Below are positions 3,333 to 56,847 of a stretch of 64,000 bases of DNA, piece by piece. How positions within the stretch are numbered: the stretch's first letter is position 1; each line of letters opens with the position of its first letter. Both the position numbers and the translations under genes were made by a program. The stretch spans positions 2,294,001-2,358,000 of the forward strand of contig CDROCS010000253.1 of NCBI GenBank assembly GCA_977020255.1. Reading direction: 5' to 3'. The DNA comes from Obrimoposthia wandeli (Eukaryota). Below the pieces are notes generated by a model that saw nothing but the letters and a program-made list of their open reading frames with translations, made no database searches and was not told where the DNA came from.

Positions 3333-4319
3333 ATGAATACAGATCAAGCTTTAGCGTTACATGAAAGCTCAATAATTTTCGATGGTTTAGTCATCGCAAA
3401 ATGGAACCGAGATTTATTTGAAGACATGGCTAAGGGTGGCTTAACCGCTGCCAACTGTACCGTATCAGTGTGGGAAGGTTTTAAAGATACCATTGACAAC
3501 ATCACCGAATTTAATCAATTTTTCTGTGATAACAGTGATTTAATTATGCCTGTACATACGACTGCTGATATTGCTAAAGCGAAAGAGCAGGGAAAAACTG
3601 GCATCATTTTAGGCTTTCAAAATGCTAATGCCTTTGAAGATAAAATTGGTTATGTCGAAATATTTAAAAAATTGGGTGTTGGCATTGTGCAAATGGCATA
3701 CAACACGCAAAACCTTGTCGGAACGGGTTGTTATGAACGTGACGGTGGCTTATCTGGCTTTGGTCTTGAAATCGTTGCTGAAATGAATCGCGTTGGCATC
3801 ATGTGTGATTTATCTCATGTGGGACCAAAAACGTCAGAAGAAGTTATTTTAGCGTCCACTAAGCCAGTGTGTTATTCACATTGTTTACCTTACGGACTAA
3901 AAGAACATCCGCGTAATAAAAAGGATGAAGAATTACGCTTTATCGCCAAACACGGTGGTTTTATTGGCGTGACTATGTTTGCACCTTTCTTGAAAAATGG
4001 CATTGATTCTACGGTTGATGACTACGTTGAAGCGATAGATTATGTAATCAATATTGCAGGAGAAGATTGTGTTGGCATAGGCACCGATTTTACGCAAGGC
4101 CATGATCAAGCATTCTTCGATATGTTAACTCACGACAAAGGTTATGCCCGTAATTTAACTAACTTTGGCACCATCATTAACCCTGAGGGCATTCGTACCT
4201 TAGGTGAATTTCCTAACTTGACCGCTACGATGTTAAAACACGGCTGGTCAGAATCTAAAATTAAAAAAATCATGGGCGAGAACTGGGTTCGCGTTCTTAA
4301 AGACGTCTGGGGAGAATAG
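3333..4319 (+). CDS. Membrane dipeptidase (M19) family protein of the dgc operon
   Basis: DLSH, YSHC, GIGTDF motifs; first gene of the P. aeruginosa PA5396-like gene order. Confidence 0.9.
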   Translation: MNTDQALALHESSIIFDGLVIAKWNRDLFEDMAKGGLTAANCTVSVWEGFKDTIDNITEFNQFFCDNSDLIMPVHTTADIAKAKEQGKTGIILGFQNANAFEDKIGYVEIFKKLGVGIVQMAYNTQNLVGTGCYERDGGLSGFGLEIVAEMNRVGIMCDLSHVGPKTSEEVILASTKPVCYSHCLPYGLKEHPRNKKDEELRFIAKHGGFIGVTMFAPFLKNGIDSTVDDYVEAIDYVINIAGEDCVGIGTDFTQGHDQAFFDMLTHDKGYARNLTNFGTIINPEGIRTLGEFPNLTATMLKHGWSESKIKKIMGENWVRVLKDVWGE

Positions 4320-4322
4320 ACA

Positions 4323-4877
4323 ATGAGTAATGTAAATAACCTGAATACCGCGAGCCACAGTCCTGATATGCCGATTTTAGTCGACAATGAGACTGGCGTT
4401 TGGACTACCGATGCTTTACCTATGTTGTATGTACCGCGTCACTTTTTTGTTAACAACCACATGGGCATCGAAGAAGAACTTGGCGCCGAAAAATACGCAG
4501 ATGTTTTATATAAAGCTGGCTATAAATCTGCTTTTTACTGGTGTGAAAAAGAAGGCGAAGAGCACGGTATTGGTGGTGAAGCTTTATTTGAGCATTATAT
4601 GAAACGTTTATCACAACGTGGCTGGGGCTTTTTCATTACTGAAGAACTCGATCTTGAAAATGGTACAGCAAAAGTTCGATTAGAAAATTCTGCTTTTGTT
4701 TATCAATACGGCAAGGTTAATCGCAAAGTCGATTATATGTTTACTGGTTGGTTTGCTGGTGCGATGGATCAAATTTCTGAAACCTTAGGTTACCCAGTGA
4801 AAACCGTTGCAAAACAAACACAATGTGCCGCTGAAGAGGGTTGCGATGTTGGTTACTTTGAAGTAACACCACGCTAA
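4323..4877 (+). CDS. V4R/DUF5943 domain protein
   Basis: LSQRGWG...FTGWFAGAMD...QC...C V4R pattern; conserved position before dgcA. Confidence 0.85.
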   Translation: MSNVNNLNTASHSPDMPILVDNETGVWTTDALPMLYVPRHFFVNNHMGIEEELGAEKYADVLYKAGYKSAFYWCEKEGEEHGIGGEALFEHYMKRLSQRGWGFFITEELDLENGTAKVRLENSAFVYQYGKVNRKVDYMFTGWFAGAMDQISETLGYPVKTVAKQTQCAAEEGCDVGYFEVTPR

Positions 4878-4925
4878 CTTTTTATTATAAACAGCTTTTT
4901 AAAGAACTAATATCAGGAGCTCATC

Positions 4926-6986
4926 ATGGCGCAGTTCGATGCACTATTTCAGCCATTAAAAATTAATCAACTTACCATACGAAATCGTGTGGTGAGTACG
5001 GCACATGCCGAAGTATATGCTACCGAAGGTGGCATGACGACCGAACGATATGTTAAGTATTACGAAGAAAAAGCCAAAGGTGGGGTTGGTCTGTCAATTT
5101 GTGGCGGCTCTAGCGTAGTGTCGATTGACAGTCCACAAGGTTGGTGGAAATCAGTTAACTTATCTACTGACAGGATCATTCCTCATTTTCAAAATTTAGC
5201 TGATGCAGTACATAAGCATGGCGGTAAGATTATGATTCAAATCACCCATATGGGACGTCGTTCTCGTTGGGATGGTGGTAATTGGTCAACGTTAGTTAGC
5301 CCTAGTGGTATCCGTGAACCTGTGCATCGCGCTACATGTAAAACTATTGAAATTGAAGAAATGCACCGCATTATTGGTGATTATGCTAAAGCTGCTGGAC
5401 GTGCAAAAGCCGGTGGCTTAGATGGTATTGAACTATCAGCAGTACACCAACATTTAATCGATCAATTCTGGAGCCCTCGTGTTAACCAGCGCGACGATGA
5501 ATATGGCGGTAGCTTCGAAAATAGAATGCGTTTTGGTATGGAAGTACTTCATGCTATTCGTGCAGAAGTGGGTCGTGACTTTGCTGTGGGCTTGCGCATT
5601 TGTGGTGATGAGTTTCACCCTGATGGGCTAAACCATGACGACATGAAACAGGTTGCTGCTTATTATGATGCCACCGGTTTGCTCGATTTCTTCAGTGTCA
5701 TTGGCTCTGGCTGTGATACGCATAATACACTGGCCAATGTTATCCCGAATATGAGCTATCCACCTGAGCCGTTCTTACATTTAGCGGCAGGCATAAAAGA
5801 AGTTGTTAATGTGCCGGTAATGCATGCTCAAAACATTAAAGATCCAAATCAGGCACAGCGTATTCTTGAAGCGGGTTATGTTGACTTCGTTGGTATGACA
5901 CGTGCACATATTGCTGACCCACATTTGATCGCTAAAATAAAACTGAACCAAATTGATCAAATAAAACAATGTGTAGGTGCTAACTATTGTATCGATCGTC
6001 AATACCAAGGTTTAGATGTATTGTGTATTCAAAATGCCGCTACATCACGTGAATCGACGATGCCACACATTATCGCCAAAACTGAAGGGATAGTGCGTAA
6101 AGTTGTCGTCATTGGTGGTGGTCCTGCAGGTATGGAAGCAGCACGTGTTTCTGCCGAGCGTGGTCATGACGTTACTTTAATTGAAAAAAATCCAGAACTT
6201 GGTGGGCAAATTACAATTGCCTCAAAAGCGCCACAGCGTGATCAAATTGCCGGTATTACCCGTTGGTTTGCCTTAGAACTAGACCGTTTAGGTGTAGATC
6301 TTCGTCTTAATACTGCCGCTGATGAAGCATTGATCCGTAGCCTTAACGCCGATGTGGTCATCTTGGCTGTTGGTGGACAACCTTTCTTAGGACAAAACCC
6401 GCATTGGGGTGTTGAAGAAGGTTTATCAGTAAGTACTTGGGATATTTTAAGTGGCAAGGTTGCGCCAGGTAAAAATGTTTTAGTTTATGACACCATTTGT
6501 GAGTTTAGTGGTTTATCTGCCGCTGACTTTTTAGCACAAAATGGTTCATTGGTTGAGATGGTAACTGATGATATTAAACCAGGTGCTGCAGTGGGTGGAA
6601 CAACATTCCCGACCTATTACCGCAGCTTGTATGAAAAAGACGTCATCATGTCCTCGGATTTAATACTAGAAAAAGTCTATCGTGAAGGCGATAAACTGGT
6701 GGCAGTGTTAGAGAATGAATATACCGGACAGCAAGAAGAGCGTGTAGTTGATCAAGTTGTAATTGAAAATGGCGTTCGTCCTGATGAAGAAATTTATCTG
6801 CAATTGAAAAGCGATTCTCGTAACAAAGGGCAAATCGATATTGAAGCGCTTTATGCGGCTTTGCCTCAGCCAATATTGTCTGAAGAAGGCGAAGGTTACT
6901 TGTTATATCGCATTGGTGATTGTGTATCGCAGCGTAATACTCATGCGGCAATATATGACGCATTGCGTTTGTGTAAGGATTTCTAG
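4926..6986 (+). CDS. dgcA: Dimethylglycine demethylation flavoprotein DgcA (OYE-like + FAD domain)
   Basis: NADH:flavin oxidoreductase fold, CVGANYC Fe-S motif, GGGPAG dinucleotide motif, operon context. Confidence 0.92.
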   Translation: MAQFDALFQPLKINQLTIRNRVVSTAHAEVYATEGGMTTERYVKYYEEKAKGGVGLSICGGSSVVSIDSPQGWWKSVNLSTDRIIPHFQNLADAVHKHGGKIMIQITHMGRRSRWDGGNWSTLVSPSGIREPVHRATCKTIEIEEMHRIIGDYAKAAGRAKAGGLDGIELSAVHQHLIDQFWSPRVNQRDDEYGGSFENRMRFGMEVLHAIRAEVGRDFAVGLRICGDEFHPDGLNHDDMKQVAAYYDATGLLDFFSVIGSGCDTHNTLANVIPNMSYPPEPFLHLAAGIKEVVNVPVMHAQNIKDPNQAQRILEAGYVDFVGMTRAHIADPHLIAKIKLNQIDQIKQCVGANYCIDRQYQGLDVLCIQNAATSRESTMPHIIAKTEGIVRKVVVIGGGPAGMEAARVSAERGHDVTLIEKNPELGGQITIASKAPQRDQIAGITRWFALELDRLGVDLRLNTAADEALIRSLNADVVILAVGGQPFLGQNPHWGVEEGLSVSTWDILSGKVAPGKNVLVYDTICEFSGLSAADFLAQNGSLVEMVTDDIKPGAAVGGTTFPTYYRSLYEKDVIMSSDLILEKVYREGDKLVAVLENEYTGQQEERVVDQVVIENGVRPDEEIYLQLKSDSRNKGQIDIEALYAALPQPILSEEGEGYLLYRIGDCVSQRNTHAAIYDALRLCKDF

Positions 6987-50449: not shown

Positions 50450-51072
50450 CTAGTTGAAACGGCTGATACAAAAAGGCTCTACATTGATTTCAGTTGATTG
50501 TCCGCTAACTAGCTGCCCAATAAGCTTTCCGGTGATCGCTCCTTGAGTTAACCCTAAGTGTTGATGACCGAGCGCGAAGAAAATTTTATCATGGTTTGGC
50601 GCTTGGCAAATCACAGGTAATGAATCGGGCAATGACGGACGACACCCCATCCACTTTTCTTGCTTCTCTTCACTATCAGGTAATGTTTTTAAAATAAAGG
50701 CGGCATTATCTTTTAGCATATCAGCGTGTTTATAGTTTGCTGGCGTATTAAGCCTTTTAGCAATTCTTTTGACCAAGCACCACACGCTATAACGCAGTGA
50801 TCAACATCTAAACATTGCTGATCTGTTAGTAAGGTGACGCCCGTTTGTGACTGAGTCACCGCGGTTACTGCTGTTTGTTGAAAGGTCATGCCCTTACACA
50901 TAGCAAACTCAGCTAGGGTTTTGCTAAGCGCTAGGGGAACAATAGTATGAGCGACATCAGTAAAATAAAGTGAATAGTTGATGTTACCGCTTAAGTTGGG
51001 CTCTAACTCAAGGGTTTGAGTTCTATCTAAAATCTTTACCGCAATGCCCGCAGTTAAATAATGAAAATACAG
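50450..51072 (-). pseudogene. D-amino-acid dehydrogenase (DadA/HypO-like) remnant
   Basis: Start-less frame ...LEPNLSGNINYSLYFTDVAHT...VIACGAWSKELLKGL, then a frameshifted NTPANYKH...WMGCRPSLPDSLPVI...GHQHLGLT. Lacks the N-terminal GxGxxG and the middle segment. Confidence 0.8.
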
Positions 51073-51189
51073 TTAAAAATCAATGCTAATAAAGAATTAT
51101 CCATAAAAATAGACTCTATGTCGTTAGGTGAAAACAGTTATTTATTGATAAAAGTTTTTTCTACTTTTTATAAACCTATCTAGCGATTT

Positions 51190-51370
51190 TTTAGTCATTT
51201 TTTGTATGAATATCGCCCTGGGTGGCTCCAACAGAAACACCCGAGAAGTTTTCAATATTGAGACTGATTTTCATCACTTTTAAGTATTCATCAATATCCC
51301 AGTATTGATGATAAAGGTCGTCAAATATTGATGTCGAAAACGTTGTTTTATTGGTATCAAAACTTAAAAC
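51190..51370 (-). pseudogene. Degenerate IS4-family transposase fragment
   Basis: Minus-strand frame DDLYHQYWDIDEYLKVMKISLNIENFSGVSV...DIH is a decayed Y-2-R-3-E-6-K signature region. Confidence 0.6.
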
Positions 51371-51670
51371 ATACTTGGTTTAACAAACTTATTGGGTTTT
51401 GTGACTCTTTGATGTTTATGTGGCTTAGGTCTATATTACATGATGAGATAGTCAAAATGACAAGCAATCCCGCCCTTTTTAGTATATAAATAACACGGCA
51501 CAAACCCTTACCTTTCTGAATTATGAAAATAGTTTTTACAAAAATAAATAAAGATAGTGGATTGATGAAACGAATAATTTTGTTTAACTGGGGTTAAATT
51601 TTCTGTTACCAGAACGCTATCAGGGATAAATAGTTTTAACTTATACCGCAACAGTGTCAGGAGCTCGGAA

Positions 51671-54154
51671 ATGGATAGTTATAGAACTAAAAAAGAGTCA
51701 TTAGAGTACGGCGAAAGTATCATTAATACGCTCAGAGAGCCTTTAATTACACTGGATCAAAATTTAAGGGTGGTCACGGTTAGTCGCTCCTTTTATGATT
51801 TTTTTAAGGTCAAGCCTGAAGAAACCGTCGGGCAGCTTATCTATCATCTGGGTAATAACCAGTGGGATATTCCTAAACTTCGAGAACTACTGGAAACCAT
51901 CTTGCCACAGCAGGCCAGTTTTGATGACTATGAAGTAGAGCACGATTTTACCACCATAGGTCGGCGCACCATGTTATTGAATGCCCGTCAGATTGTTCAA
52001 GTAAAGGGCAAAGAGCGGATCATTTTATTGGGCATCCAGGATATTACTGAGCGTAAGGAAAGAGAGGCCAAACGGGAAAAGACCAGAATAGAACTTGAGG
52101 TCATTAAAAAAGCGGCAGATGAAGCCAGTGCGTATACTGAGAGTATCATTAACACGGTGAGAGAACCTTTAATTGCACTGGATCAGGACTTAAGAGTAGT
52201 CACCGTCAGTCGTTCCTTTTATGACTTTTTTAAGGTTAATCCTGAAGAGACTGTTGGGCAGCTTATCTATCATCTGGGCAATAACCAGTGGGATATTCCC
52301 AAACTGCGGGATCTGCTGGAAACTATCTTACCGCAGCAGGCTAGTTTTGATCACTATGAAGTTGAACACGACTTTGCCAACATAGGTCGGCGCACCATGT
52401 TATTGAATGCTAGACAGATTGAACAATCAACAGGCAAAAATCGCATCATCCTACTCGCCATCGAAGACATTACACAACGTAAAGAGACTGAAGCTGGTCT
52501 AGAAAAAACCAGAATAGAACTTGAGATCATTAAAAAAGCGGCAGATGAAGCCAGTGCATATACCAATAGTATCATTAACACGGTGAGAGAGCCTTTAATT
52601 GCGCTGGATCAGGACTTAAGAGTGGTCACCGTCAGTCGCTCCTTTTATGATTTTTTTAAGGTTAAGCCTGAGGAAACTGTTGGGCAGCTTATCTATCATC
52701 TGGGTAATAACCAGTGGGATATTCCTAAACTGAGGGAGCTGCTGGAAACCATTTTACCGCAGAAGGCCAGTTTTGATGATTATGAGGTTGAGCACGATTT
52801 TGCCACGATAGGTCGGCGTACCATGTTATTGAATGCTAGACAGATTGAACGGTCAACAGGTAAAAATCGTATCATCCTACTTGCCATTGAAGACATTACA
52901 CAACGTAAAGAGGTTGAAGCTGGCTTGGAAATAACCAGAATAGCATTAGTCAATGCGAACGCAGAGCGACAAGGGGTATTTAACAGCGTATTGGATGGCT
53001 TAGTTATTATCGATGCTAAAGGCACTATAGATGCCTTCAATCCAGCAGCCGAGGGCATCTTCGGCTATATGGAACAGGAGGTTGTTGGAATGAATGTCAA
53101 AGTTCTTATGCCCGAACCATATCGTAGCGAGCACGATGGTTATCTTAGTAATCATGCAAAAACGGGTGAAAAAAAAATTATCGGAATCGGTCGAGAGGTG
53201 ACTGGTCGACGCAAGAACGGCACAATTTTTCCGATGGATCTTGCCGTTTCACCTATGACTGTTAGTGGCAAACCAAAGTTTGTCGGACGGGTTAGAGATA
53301 TCTCAGAGCGTAAGCAGATAGAAAAGGAATTGAAGCTTGCTAAATTGAGCGCTGAATCAGGCAATAGCATGAAATCTGAATTTCTGGCCAGTATGTCACA
53401 CGAATTACGCACGCCGCTCAATGCAATTATAGGTTTCTCAGAAGTACTTAAGGATGGTGTAGTTGGCGAAATTACCGAGCAGCAAGGCAAGTACATTGGC
53501 AATATTTTTGATAGCGGTCAGCACTTACTATCACTGATTAACGATATTCTCGATCTTTCGAAGGTCGAAGCAGGCAAGATGAACCTCGATCTAGAAACAT
53601 TGCAGCCAGCTATCCTGTTGCATGATAGTCTCTCCATGATAAAAGAGAAAGCGATGGCGCAGGGGATTGAGCTAAAAGAAGATATTTCCTTGGATTTAGG
53701 CTCTATGCAGTGCGATGGACGCAAGTTCAAGCAAATCGTCTACAACCTATTGTCGAATGCGGTTAAGTTCATCTCCAACGATGGAGAGATCACGCTGTCT
53801 GCTCGTCGTATTCCTCGGTCAGAGGCGTGTGTGTTCTCAGGAAATAGTACGTGGAAAACGCGCGTGATCGGTGGTAAGGAAAATGAATTGGGTGATTTTG
53901 ACGAATTTCTGGAAATTGGCGTACTCGATACTGGCATAGGTATCTCCGGGGCTGACCTCGACAAACTATTTCAACCCTTCACCCAGATCGATAGCACTCT
54001 AGCACGAAAATACGAAGGCACTGGTCTGGGGTTGGTTATGGTGCAAAATATTGCCCACTTGCACGGAGGTGCTTCGGCAGTATCCAGTGCTGAGGGGCAG
54101 GGTTCCTGTTTTATGGTCTGGTTGCCATGGCGTGACAATATTGTGGAGAATTAA
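51671..54154 (+). CDS. Cytoplasmic histidine kinase: 3 tandem PAS + FixL-type heme PAS + HisKA/HATPase
   Basis: AGGAG RBS; no TM; MPEPYRSEHDGY...IIGIGREVTGRRKNGTIFPM; SHELRTPL; NLLSNAVKF; GTGLGL. Confidence 0.93.
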   Translation: MDSYRTKKESLEYGESIINTLREPLITLDQNLRVVTVSRSFYDFFKVKPEETVGQLIYHLGNNQWDIPKLRELLETILPQQASFDDYEVEHDFTTIGRRTMLLNARQIVQVKGKERIILLGIQDITERKEREAKREKTRIELEVIKKAADEASAYTESIINTVREPLIALDQDLRVVTVSRSFYDFFKVNPEETVGQLIYHLGNNQWDIPKLRDLLETILPQQASFDHYEVEHDFANIGRRTMLLNARQIEQSTGKNRIILLAIEDITQRKETEAGLEKTRIELEIIKKAADEASAYTNSIINTVREPLIALDQDLRVVTVSRSFYDFFKVKPEETVGQLIYHLGNNQWDIPKLRELLETILPQKASFDDYEVEHDFATIGRRTMLLNARQIERSTGKNRIILLAIEDITQRKEVEAGLEITRIALVNANAERQGVFNSVLDGLVIIDAKGTIDAFNPAAEGIFGYMEQEVVGMNVKVLMPEPYRSEHDGYLSNHAKTGEKKIIGIGREVTGRRKNGTIFPMDLAVSPMTVSGKPKFVGRVRDISERKQIEKELKLAKLSAESGNSMKSEFLASMSHELRTPLNAIIGFSEVLKDGVVGEITEQQGKYIGNIFDSGQHLLSLINDILDLSKVEAGKMNLDLETLQPAILLHDSLSMIKEKAMAQGIELKEDISLDLGSMQCDGRKFKQIVYNLLSNAVKFISNDGEITLSARRIPRSEACVFSGNSTWKTRVIGGKENELGDFDEFLEIGVLDTGIGISGADLDKLFQPFTQIDSTLARKYEGTGLGLVMVQNIAHLHGGASAVSSAEGQGSCFMVWLPWRDNIVEN
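51716..52945 (+). repeat. Three 426-bp in-frame tandem repeats (PAS units)
   Basis: AGTATCATTAA recurs at 51716, 52142 and 52568; ACCAGAATAG recurs at 52082, 52508 and 52934. Confidence 0.95.
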
Positions 54155-54291
54155 TGCATTTTCCCATGCTATTACCAACAATCATATTCGATGAATATTT
54201 TTTAGGATCATTGATAAATCGAGCTTTAATAATAAAAAATTTATAAACGAAGTTAAGTATGCTTTAAATATATGCATCAAGGAAAAATTAA

Positions 54292-54660
54292 ATGGCTCGT
54301 ATATTGATCGTTGAAGATAATCCCGCCAACATGGAGCTAGCAACGCTTCTACTGGAAAAGGCTGGCTATAATATAATTCAGGCCGAAGACGCGCAAAGTG
54401 GTCTGCAAAAGAGCCGAACAGAATCTCCTGATTTGATTCTGATGGATGTACAACTTCCCGGTATGTCGGGTCTAGAAGCTGCTTTGTTGCTAAAAGCAGA
54501 TCCTGTTACGCAGTCTATCCCGATCATCGCGGTAACCGCCCTAGCCATGACTGGCGATGAGGAGCGTTGTCTAGCTGCGGGCTGTGATGGCTATCTCTCC
54601 AAACCACTACGATATAAGGTGTTGTGGGCTACGGTCGAAAAACATTTAATGAATCACTGA
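54292..54660 (+). CDS. Single-domain response regulator, DivK-like
   Basis: ILIVEDNPANMEL, DLILMDVQLPGMSG, IPIIAVTALAMTGDEE..LAAGCDGYLSKP. Confidence 0.92.
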   Translation: MARILIVEDNPANMELATLLLEKAGYNIIQAEDAQSGLQKSRTESPDLILMDVQLPGMSGLEAALLLKADPVTQSIPIIAVTALAMTGDEERCLAAGCDGYLSKPLRYKVLWATVEKHLMNH

Positions 54661-54694
54661 AATAGCAATGATGACCTTATTTTATTAACAGGAG

Positions 54695-55756
54695 ATGTAC
54701 ATGGGTAAATCCGCTAAAATTATTATTGTCGACGATGAAGCACTAAATCGAGATCTATTGTCAGTAATGCTTGAATATGAAGGCTACAAAGTAATAACTG
54801 CTAGCAGCGGTGAAGAAGCACTGAGAAGTGTAGAGCGAGATCCACCAGACTTAATATTACTCGATGTAATGATGCCAGGGATGAATGGCAATAAGGTTGT
54901 TGGTAAACTCAAATACAATCCAGACACTAAGTCTATTCCTGTCATTATGGTAACCTCATTAGATAGCCGTGCTGCCAAATTGGCGGCACTCAGCTTAGGT
55001 GCTGAGGAGTTCCTAACAAAGCCTGTAGATCGAGCCGAGCTCATACTACGTGTCAGAAACATGTTGCGCCTGAAGGATCATAGTGATCTGCTCTCCGATT
55101 ACAACGATACGCTTGAAGCAAAGATGGAGGAACGCACTGCTGAGCTTGAAATAGCCTATAAGGACACAATAGTCACCTTGGTTCGCGCCGCTGAATACAA
55201 GGATGAAGATACTGGCGCACATGTACGCCGTATTGCACACTATTCGTATATGCTGGCTAAACAGCTTGGTCTCAATACTCAAGAGAGAAAGGCACTGTAT
55301 TTTGCTAGCCCCATGCACGATATCGGAAAAATAGGTATACCTGATGATATTCTGTTCAAGACGACTCCTTTCACGCCGAAAGAATGGAAGATAATGCAGA
55401 CTCACAGTGCCATCGGCGGACAAATCCTTAATAAAGGAGATTCTCCTCTTATCAGAAAGGCGGCGGAGATTGCGCTAAATCACCATGAACGCTGGGATGG
55501 TACTGGCTATCCCAAGGGTATTTCTGGTGAAGCTATCCCGTTATCTGCGCGGATTATGTCTATATGTGATGTCTATGATGCGCTACGCTCGAAGCGCCCC
55601 TACAAGCCAGCCTTTAGCCATCAAAAGGCAGTAAATATTATTATTGAAGGTGATGGAAGAACAATGCCAGAGCATTTCGACCCAGTAGTGCTTGCTGCTT
55701 TTGCTGCGCATCCAGAGTACTTTGAAGATATATATGAAAAATATACGGATGACTAA
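54695..55756 (+). CDS. REC-HD-GYP c-di-GMP phosphodiesterase (RpfG-like)
   Basis: REC (VDD, DVMMPG, KP); TGAHV.R; HDIGKIGIPD; HHERWDGTGYP; DVYDAL...RPYK. Confidence 0.93.
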   Translation: MYMGKSAKIIIVDDEALNRDLLSVMLEYEGYKVITASSGEEALRSVERDPPDLILLDVMMPGMNGNKVVGKLKYNPDTKSIPVIMVTSLDSRAAKLAALSLGAEEFLTKPVDRAELILRVRNMLRLKDHSDLLSDYNDTLEAKMEERTAELEIAYKDTIVTLVRAAEYKDEDTGAHVRRIAHYSYMLAKQLGLNTQERKALYFASPMHDIGKIGIPDDILFKTTPFTPKEWKIMQTHSAIGGQILNKGDSPLIRKAAEIALNHHERWDGTGYPKGISGEAIPLSARIMSICDVYDALRSKRPYKPAFSHQKAVNIIIEGDGRTMPEHFDPVVLAAFAAHPEYFEDIYEKYTDD

Positions 55757-55896
55757 CACTATGAGGTTTTGTAAAGATATCTACTTTAAGTCAGGTTTAC
55801 TTTTCTGACACTATAAATATTTGAACGACAAAAAATTCCCGTTGTATCGATGCTTCAAGGTGATAGCAACGTTTTATGCTATCACTATAGACGACG

Positions 55897-56847
55897 TTAT
55901 GTATTGTCTTTTTCTTCAGTAATGCTGTCTAGCCAAGTAAACCACTGTTGGTCCATTGAGGTTGACCAAGAGCGCATCAGTGCTTGATATCCTGCCCAAT
56001 CACCTTGGCGCGATAATACTAAGCTTTGTTCGACTTTATTGCGGTGATTTTCCATCATAAAGCGTACCGCTAAATAGCCCCAACGATAAACACGATCACT
56101 GCCATTATTGTTATTGTAGCTAGTATTAAACAATTCACTTAACGGGAATGTTTTACTATTTGCCATTGTTATGGCTTTTGGATTGTTTTTATCCCAAGCA
56201 ATATACTCAGCAACGCCTTCAGACCACCAAACGCCGTGTGGGTATGATGCGTTAGGTGTTGGACAAAATTCAGGACCAGCATGATCATCATGTAAACCAT
56301 TACAATAATCACCATAGCGGTTAAAACGTCCATCAAGATAGTGAATGTATTCATGAGATAGGTTCCATAAACCACCATCACGTTCGTAAGCGACAAACTC
56401 GGCATGGTTATCTTGTTTTTCTGGGGAGCCCTCTAAGTACATGCCACCATTATTGGTTGGCATAGTAAAGTGCGCAGTGGCATATTTTACGTATTCTGCA
56501 TTTGAACTATAAAAGTTCGCGCGAAGGTTGGTGTTATTATCATCACTAACAGGTTTATTGCGGGTATTGAATATTTGATGAAACTTAGCCTCTTGGGCAA
56601 TAAGTTCCTTGCAAGCCTTGGCAACTTTATTACTAGATAATGCTTGTGAGCGGATGGTAATAGACTTGTTGCACTGGTTAACTTGTTTAAGTACCTGCTC
56701 AACACTGGCAAGTTGTTTATCATCAGTTTTTTTGTGTTGCGTTGTGGTTGGAGCTTCACTTGCCATAACTGAATTTGAAATAAAGTAGGCAACCAAAATA
56801 AAAGTACAGTTTAAAACGATACTTAATGGCATTTTAGTATTCTTCAA
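55897..56847 (-). CDS. Short M9 collagenase-like metallopeptidase
   Basis: Signal peptide; TNNGGMYLEG, HEYIHYLDGRF, WWSEGVAEY, YRWGYLAVRFM. Confidence 0.85.
   Translation of the reverse strand: MKNTKMPLSIVLNCTFILVAYFISNSVMASEAPTTTQHKKTDDKQLASVEQVLKQVNQCNKSITIRSQALSSNKVAKACKELIAQEAKFHQIFNTRNKPVSDDNNTNLRANFYSSNAEYVKYATAHFTMPTNNGGMYLEGSPEKQDNHAEFVAYERDGGLWNLSHEYIHYLDGRFNRYGDYCNGLHDDHAGPEFCPTPNASYPHGVWWSEGVAEYIAWDKNNPKAITMANSKTFPLSELFNTSYNNNNGSDRVYRWGYLAVRFMMENHRNKVEQSLVLSRQGDWAGYQALMRSWSTSMDQQWFTWLDSITEEKDNT

Follow-up and report, generated by a model that had tools for sequence, protein, structure and literature searches.

A foreign, mosaic two-component cassette that probably links oxygen to c-di-GMP breakdown in a marine Colwellia-type bacterium

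The subject of this study is a three-gene signalling cassette located in a DNA stretch of 64,000 nucleotides (hereafter the window; positions 2,294,001 to 2,358,000 of contig CDROCS010000253.1, assembly GCA_977020255.1, deposited under Obrimoposthia wandeli). The contig (C253) is a 4.68-Mb bacterial chromosome within a mixed assembly of 1.35 Gb and 6,912 contigs, and its owner is a marine Colwellia-type bacterium. The cassette consists of three co-oriented open reading frames (ORFs) of the + strand: 51671-54154 (827 amino acids, aa), 54292-54660 (122 aa) and 54695-55756 (353 aa). A Pfam search revealed four PAS domains followed by HisKA and HATPase_c in the first, a receiver (REC) in the second, and REC plus HD_5/HD in the third. 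The cassette is foreign to this chromosome, and its kinase is a recent mosaic, in which a FixL-type heme PAS domain and its helix were inserted between three PAS repeats and a Paraglaciecola-type core. Judged by sequence comparison, it is rather likely that the three genes constitute a single two-component unit, composed of an O2-gated heme-PAS kinase, a DivK-like receiver and a REC-HD-GYP phosphodiesterase of cyclic dimeric guanosine monophosphate (c-di-GMP). Such a unit would probably link oxygen to c-di-GMP breakdown.

Results

A FixL-type heme PAS domain in a soluble kinase

The kinase contains no transmembrane segment (its 19-residue Kyte-Doolittle mean peaks at 1.12), as an earlier reading of the letters alone (the sequence-only reading) had proposed. 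The same reading had recognized in the fourth PAS the proximal His and distal Arg of FixL, and this was borne out when the domain (residues 430-554) was aligned with the solved heme domains of FixL from Bradyrhizobium japonicum and Rhizobium meliloti (1dp6, 1d06 and 1xj2; E-values of 1e-32 to 6e-32, identity of about 50%). His488 (53132-53134) and Arg508 (53192-53194), 20 residues apart, align with the two FixL residues, His488 being placed on the F-helix and Arg508 at the start of the G-strand. Among the 11 closest heme-PAS relatives the proximal His is nearly invariant and the distal Arg invariant. The distal pocket is also kept: Ile503, Leu524 and Val526 correspond to Ile215, Leu236 and Ile238 of B. 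japonicum FixL (BjFixL), and Val is also present at the last of these positions in R. meliloti FixL. Downstream of the heme PAS lies the HisKA and HATPase_c core (residues 564-827; 53360-54154, + strand), in which His577, within an H-E-x-x-T box, was identified from the sequence as the phospho-acceptor.

At one position the domain departs from BjFixL, as Arg206, which participates in the FixL switch, is replaced by Asn494. Since this position is occupied by Asn, His, Gly or Ser in the 11 closest heme-PAS relatives, Asn494 is best regarded as a trait of the subfamily and not as a defect. The replacement is one of the points in favour of a different, unlikely reading, in which the heme PAS is functional but responds to nitric oxide (NO), to carbon monoxide (CO) or to iron redox state, or in which O2 activates the kinase. 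Heme PAS domains that share this fold do differ as to the ligand and to the sign of its effect, O2 being an activator of EcDOS/PdeO and an inhibitor of AxPDEA1 (PMC8846402, Table 3), and in the NO-sensing systems HnoX-HnoK-HnoB/HnoD and NosP-NahK gas-regulated kinases feed c-di-GMP phosphodiesterases. Against this reading, the window kinase conserves both the distal Arg and the Ile/Leu/Val pocket, to which FixL owes its O2 response, and its F-helix and FG-loop are nearly identical to those of R. meliloti FixL.

Two further heme-PAS proteins were encountered. A protein of an Arenicella metagenome-assembled genome (MAG), P0325, is 68% identical to the heme PAS within its residues 136-268 and has Tyr at the position of the proximal His. 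The chromosome carrying the cassette also encodes (C253:897500-907400) a one-component heme-PAS-GGDEF-EAL protein of 868 aa (ORF 3592-6198 of locus L112), whose PAS is 43% identical to the heme PAS of the window, with both His and Arg conserved; its gene directly follows that of a PAS-containing, Aer-like chemoreceptor (ORF 2051-3586 of L112).

Mosaic structure of the kinase

The kinase can be divided into three parts. Residues 1-423 (51671-52939, + strand) form three tandem PAS repeats (PAS1-3) with a period of 426 bp and 85% nucleotide identity, residues 424-563 (52940-53359, + strand) comprise the FixL-type heme PAS with its signalling helix, and the remainder is the core described above. 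Close counterparts of the outer parts were found in two loci. The first, in Paraglaciecola sp. L1A13 (L109, CP047024.1), encodes a 512-aa kinase, two small receivers and a REC-HD-GYP protein; its kinase has a single PAS (82% identical to PAS3 of the window) joined straight to the core (70% identical). The second, a Logan contig (L110), has the same one-PAS design, and its core, REC and HD-GYP are 73%, 82% and 80% identical, respectively, to those of the window. In comparison with both, the window kinase has three tandem copies of the PAS unit instead of one and an additional block of approximately 140 residues (424-563) between the last PAS repeat and HisKA.

The inserted block has a different affiliation. 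Over its heme-PAS segment (aa 426-555) it shares 75% identity with the last heme PAS of P0290, a protein of Neptunomonas antarctica (L111, FTOE01000005.1), and the signalling helix up to the phospho-His is of equal length in the two kinases. The gene of P0290 is adjoined by genes for a small REC and then a REC-PAS-GGDEF-EAL protein, the whole group lying at 8001-13039 of L111. In a large protein database no protein was found that joins the heme PAS of the window to its kinase core; the best matches reached 59-63% identity over kinase residues 424-720 and 43-45% over residues 290-827. The PAS repeats (residues 1-423), in turn, show 82% identity over 409 aa between this gammaproteobacterium and multi-PAS kinases from metagenomes. 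These relatives are multi-repeat kinases of 919-927 aa, the few named ones originating from Thermodesulfovibrionales and Syntrophales MAGs, and many proteins with the PAS repeat carry the JGI (Joint Genome Institute) label "CheB/CheR fusion protein".

A third type of sensor was identified in kinases of the MB3u-41 group, in which a core 69-71% identical to that of the window follows a Cache-like domain and a PAS. The small REC is 76-84% identical across the related cassettes. Core and receivers thus occur with different sensors, and the cassette's output half has been joined to at least three different inputs. As parent of the cassette, the Cache-PAS kinases of the MB3u-41 group had been considered, but the forms from Paraglaciecola and the Logan contig proved to be closer. 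An origin of PAS1-3 as local copies of the neighbouring hemerythrin-PAS_10 gene was rejected, that gene being a conserved flank and the repeats a widespread family.

The domain history bears on whether the heme PAS could be a passenger, either heme-free or uncoupled, with the cassette answering to the PAS repeats as in its Paraglaciecola-type ancestor. Related cassettes do with the PAS repeat alone, and this repeat is extremely conserved (82% identity to proteins of distant phyla) and triplicated in the window. We nevertheless consider a passenger quite unlikely, as every pocket residue is intact, the gene has no interruption, and its sequence in an independent sample is nearly the same. Moreover, the donor-type helix has been retained in the inserted block, at an unchanged length up to the phospho-His, and this retention speaks for a mechanical coupling between heme PAS and kinase. 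Besides the input of the predicted heme sensor, the kinase probably receives a second one through the three PAS repeats.

Receivers and HD-GYP output

The stand-alone receiver (54292-54660, + strand, 122 aa) obtained 93.5 bits with Pfam REC, and its best solved relative is DivK (1m5t, E-value of 7e-29), in agreement with the resemblance noted earlier. Its acidic pair, Asp52, Thr82 and Lys104 are intact, and the conserved Asp, Thr and Lys could be read from the sequences of both receivers. The REC domain of the REC-HD-GYP regulator (54695-55756, + strand, 353 aa) has the PleD receiver as its best solved match. The adjoining domain scored 119 bits with HD_5 (cut-off 27), and both of its motifs, HD and HHERWDGTGYP (HHExxDGxGYP), are present, so that the protein was rightly described as intact.

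The best solved match of the HD-GYP domain is the active c-di-GMP phosphodiesterase PmGH (4mcw, E-value of 1.4e-47). Alignment with the tri-iron centre of this structure showed that the His, Asp and His-His ligands are conserved, while the metal ligand Glu185 of PmGH is replaced by Asp. The best NCBIfam match of the whole protein is a family of response-regulator c-di-GMP phosphodiesterases, with a score below the cut-off. Some HD-GYP enzymes act on 3'3'-cyclic GMP-AMP (cGAMP), and a cGAMP phosphodiesterase of Vibrio cholerae (5z7c, E-value of 1e-37) ranks second among the HD-GYP structures matched. This match and the substitution of Glu185 could be taken to indicate that the protein hydrolyses 3'3'-cGAMP, or that it is a non-catalytic regulator resembling the degenerate HnoD. 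Either seems very unlikely, given the better match to PmGH, the intact remaining metal ligands and GYP motif, and the affiliation of the best NCBIfam family; c-di-GMP is the predicted substrate.

Foreign origin of the cassette

Relatives of the window were reached from a Colwellia locus, identified by the neighbouring prolidase gene. Seven genomes were found to be syntenic, one (G365) with a prolidase 97% identical to that of the window and six with 83-93% identity. In all seven, the flanks are kept: genes for an M13 peptidase, PAP2, DUF2956, hemerythrin-PAS_10 and DAO on one side, and for an M9 peptidase and the M24 prolidase on the other. None of the seven carries the cassette at this site. 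In G365 (L089, G365:C1, 2755-15425) the DAO and M9/prolidase genes are separated by a hydroxyproline-catabolism cluster of about 12 kb, encoding DHDPS-like, two Pro_racemase, Aldedh, MFS/POT, M24, OCD and LysR proteins. The cluster was annotated gene by gene in G365; the other six relatives have about 9-12 kb of other genes at the site, whose spacing and M24 paralogue fit the same cluster. Homology between the window and G365 ends at about 51071; it restarts where the M9 gene has its 3' end, at about 55898. It is therefore well supported that a foreign segment of 4.8 kb (approximately 51072-55897) replaced the hydroxyproline-catabolism cluster of about 12 kb. Contig C253 as a whole yielded no hydroxyproline epimerase. 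At this site, between collagenase-family and prolidase genes, the strain has traded hydroxyproline catabolism for a sensor.

The cassette is also confined in its distribution. Among 55 genomes of the window's genus no orthologue was found, the best REC-HD-GYP match there being 47% identical. Of 201 sampled genomes of the family, three possess close homologues, all of them in another genus; their REC (82-84%) and HD-GYP (74-76%) are closer to the window than is their prolidase (64-65%). The best REC-HD-GYP match among 5.8 billion proteins (83% identity) comes from Paraglaciecola sp. L1A13, outside the host genus. In a quick maximum likelihood tree the window protein is sister to the latter (SH-aLRT, the Shimodaira-Hasegawa-like approximate likelihood ratio test, 98) and far from the HD-GYP proteins of its own genus.

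The composition of the cassette, which had been judged by eye to be more GC-rich than its flanks, was computed and is indeed higher (0.43-0.45 versus 0.35-0.39). The total GC content is in itself unexceptional, as window genes at 5-17 kb also reach 0.43-0.46, and the informative figure is therefore the GC content of third codon positions (GC3). For the cassette it amounts to 0.40-0.49 (kinase 0.44, small REC 0.44, REC-HD-GYP 0.40), compared with 0.32 +/- 0.046 in the 31 other genes of the window, i.e. a deviation of +1.6 to +2.6 standard deviations (SD). The Paraglaciecola cassette, with a GC3 of 0.39-0.44, resembles that of the window.

Import is strongly supported, because synteny, distribution, GC3 and nearest homologues outside the genus (also in the tree) all point to it. 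That the cassette is instead ancestral at the locus and was repeatedly lost in relatives is extremely unlikely: the lack of detected mobility genes or a target-site duplication at the borders would fit, but all seven syntenic relatives carry other genes here (about 9-12 kb), and their DAO gene is full-length or longer where the window has only a stub; the 55 genomes of the genus yielded no orthologue, GC3 is atypical, and the nearest relatives belong to other genera and are more similar to the window than is the neighbouring prolidase. With regard to the "imported island" of the sequence-only reading, the foreign origin has thus stood, whereas the idea of a ready-made unit that moved whole has given way to a mosaic.

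Borders, neighbouring genes and assembly check

On the left, the segment is bordered by the remnant of a flavin adenine dinucleotide (FAD)-dependent oxidoreductase gene of the DAO family (50450-51071, - strand), of which only the C-terminal half is left, with a frameshift and an internal deletion of 172 bp. In G365 this gene is intact (427 aa), and it is full-length or longer in all seven syntenic relatives. Between the remnant and the kinase gene lies an AT-rich leader of about 600 bp (51072-51670, neither strand assigned; GC about 0.36), which has no counterpart in relatives, shows no coding signal and is single-copy in the assembly; presumably it holds the promoter region of the cassette. 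Promoter and terminator scans of the locus gave a background level only. On the right, a short gene for an M9 (collagenase-family) peptidase (55897-56847, - strand) is conserved in relatives. Its product has 316 aa, compared with 322 aa in G365, and, being of the same size, the gene is not evidently a pseudogene. Thus, of the pseudogene border proposed earlier, only the left-hand, decayed DAO gene holds. Upstream of the cassette, the hemerythrin-PAS_10 gene is intact in the window (322 aa) and split in G365 (116 + 199 aa; L089 1653-2623).

A remnant of an IS4 insertion sequence (IS) had also been proposed at the border, and none was found. The border DNA (50902-51670) occurs in one copy in the whole assembly, gave no plasmid match in blastn searches, and its small ORFs matched no Pfam family at E<=10. 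Among the ORFs scanned with Pfam at 45.2-63.3 kb, including those neighbouring the border, no transposase was identified.

The cassette is not an assembly artefact. The window contains no N letters. In the best-holding sequencing run (X1, possibly the sample from which the window was assembled), contigs span 51003-51859 and 52821-56074 with at least 99% agreement, and contigs of an independent 2018 study span 50965-51497 and 52821-53795, also with at least 99% agreement. Taken together, these contigs cover both outer junctions; two of the junctions, the left one and the inner one from PAS3 through heme PAS to HisKA, were seen in more than one study. Near-identical sequence was found in runs (X1-X6) of two differently labelled organisms from two studies, and the bacterium may therefore be a recurrent associate or a contaminant. 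The closest named genome match for the kinase is Colwellia sp. MB3u-41; an exact look-up of five window proteins in a protein collection gave no match.

Discussion

Proposed mechanism

Every sequence test run is compatible with a heme-PAS kinase paired with two receivers, of which one is joined to an HD-GYP phosphodiesterase. If the cassette works in this manner, ferrous heme carried on His488 would bind O2, and Arg508 would stabilise the ligand. By analogy with FixL, the O2-bound state would keep the kinase off. A drop in O2 would then allow autophosphorylation on His577 and transfer of phosphate to both receivers. Once phosphorylated, REC-HD-GYP would switch on c-di-GMP hydrolysis, by which motility or dispersal may be favoured. 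The DivK-like receiver may act as a phosphate drain or, in the manner of DivK, exert feedback on the kinase; it is the DivK/PleD-like pairing of the two receivers that suggests allosteric feedback as an alternative to a phosphate sink.

Several findings weigh against this reading, among them the replacements of Arg206 and Glu185 and the close match to 5z7c considered above. The kinase scored 175.8 bits with the NCBIfam FixL equivalog, for which the cut-off is 850, and a FixJ-type partner is absent, its partners being REC and REC-HD-GYP. The three PAS repeats upstream of the heme PAS may dominate or gate the signal. No RNA runs containing the locus were found among the sequencing runs. With respect to the import, neither terminal nor target-site repeats that would account for the arrival of the segment were detected at its borders, and no mobility genes were found there (no tRNA scan was made).

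Comparison with known systems

The cassette was compared with the systems that its parts resemble most closely. With FixL of B. japonicum and Sinorhizobium meliloti, the window kinase shares a heme PAS (about 50% identical) with the same His, Arg and pocket, placed directly before the dimerisation helix of the kinase. It differs in that a lone REC and a REC-HD-GYP protein take the place of a FixJ-type transcription factor, the kinase core is a HisKA of PleC/DivJ-like character, Arg206 is replaced by Asn and three extra PAS domains are located upstream.

The cassettes of Paraglaciecola sp. L1A13 and the MB3u-41 group have the same order of kinase, small REC and REC-HD-GYP (HD-GYP 74-83%, REC 76-84% and kinase core 69-73% identical). 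Neither, however, has a heme PAS, their sensors being a single PAS repeat and a Cache-like domain with PAS, respectively. The Paraglaciecola cassette (L109 3282-11056) adjoins genes for a heme oxygenase, a bacteriophytochrome kinase and a receiver, which suggests a light-linked network of multiple kinases and receivers ending in the same REC-HD-GYP. P0290 of N. antarctica has the closest heme PAS and helix (75%), and after it, too, come a small REC and a c-di-GMP enzyme coupled to a receiver; unlike the window kinase, P0290 has three tandem heme PAS domains, no PAS repeat, a core only about 40% alike and a GGDEF-EAL output. This locus constitutes a second uncharacterised arrangement in which a heme kinase would lead to c-di-GMP.

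The Paraglaciecola form, without a heme PAS, and the Neptunomonas form, of the donor type, would make up a natural before/after pair of surviving parental architectures, if the proposed history is true. The locus is a clean natural case of sensor rewiring by domain insertion and, since both parental architectures are identifiable, the rules by which a new PAS input is coupled to the kinase helix become directly testable.

In the DivJ/PleC-DivK-PleD system of Caulobacter, where the divK and pleD genes are adjacent in an operon arrangement, the receivers correspond to those of the window, the small one to DivK and the output receiver to PleD, and the genes are adjacent in both. In contrast, the output of the window is HD-GYP and not GGDEF, its kinase is soluble with a heme PAS, and the cell-cycle context is missing.

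Kinase-mediated inputs of NO to c-di-GMP are known from H-NOX/HnoK/HnoB/HnoD and NosP/NahK (PMC8846402). In these networks of Shewanella, Vibrio and Pseudomonas a heme gas sensor acts through a histidine kinase on receiver-coupled c-di-GMP phosphodiesterases (PMC8846402), and a second receiver protein serves as a modulator, as may be the case for the DivK-like protein of the window. Their heme sensor, however, is separate and NO-specific, their active phosphodiesterase is of the EAL type and their HD-GYP member is degenerate. In EcDOS/PdeO and AxPDEA1 a heme PAS controls c-di-GMP hydrolysis, but there sensor and enzyme are fused, whereas in the window a phosphorelay would stand between them.

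The O2 sensors listed in a 2022 census of c-di-GMP inputs are all one-component, and FixL is not mentioned there (PMC8846402, Table 3); a full-text literature search for FixL together with HD-GYP returned two passing mentions only. If the kinase route with two receivers is true, it would add amplification, branching and feedback to signalling from O2 to c-di-GMP. It is possible, at somewhat less than an even chance in our estimation, that the cassette represents the first FixL-type two-component O2 sensor wired directly to an HD-GYP phosphodiesterase, caught just after its assembly by splicing. Set beside the known systems, its parts are familiar and their wiring is uncharacterised, and the main added value of the locus is its clearly resolved mosaic origin.

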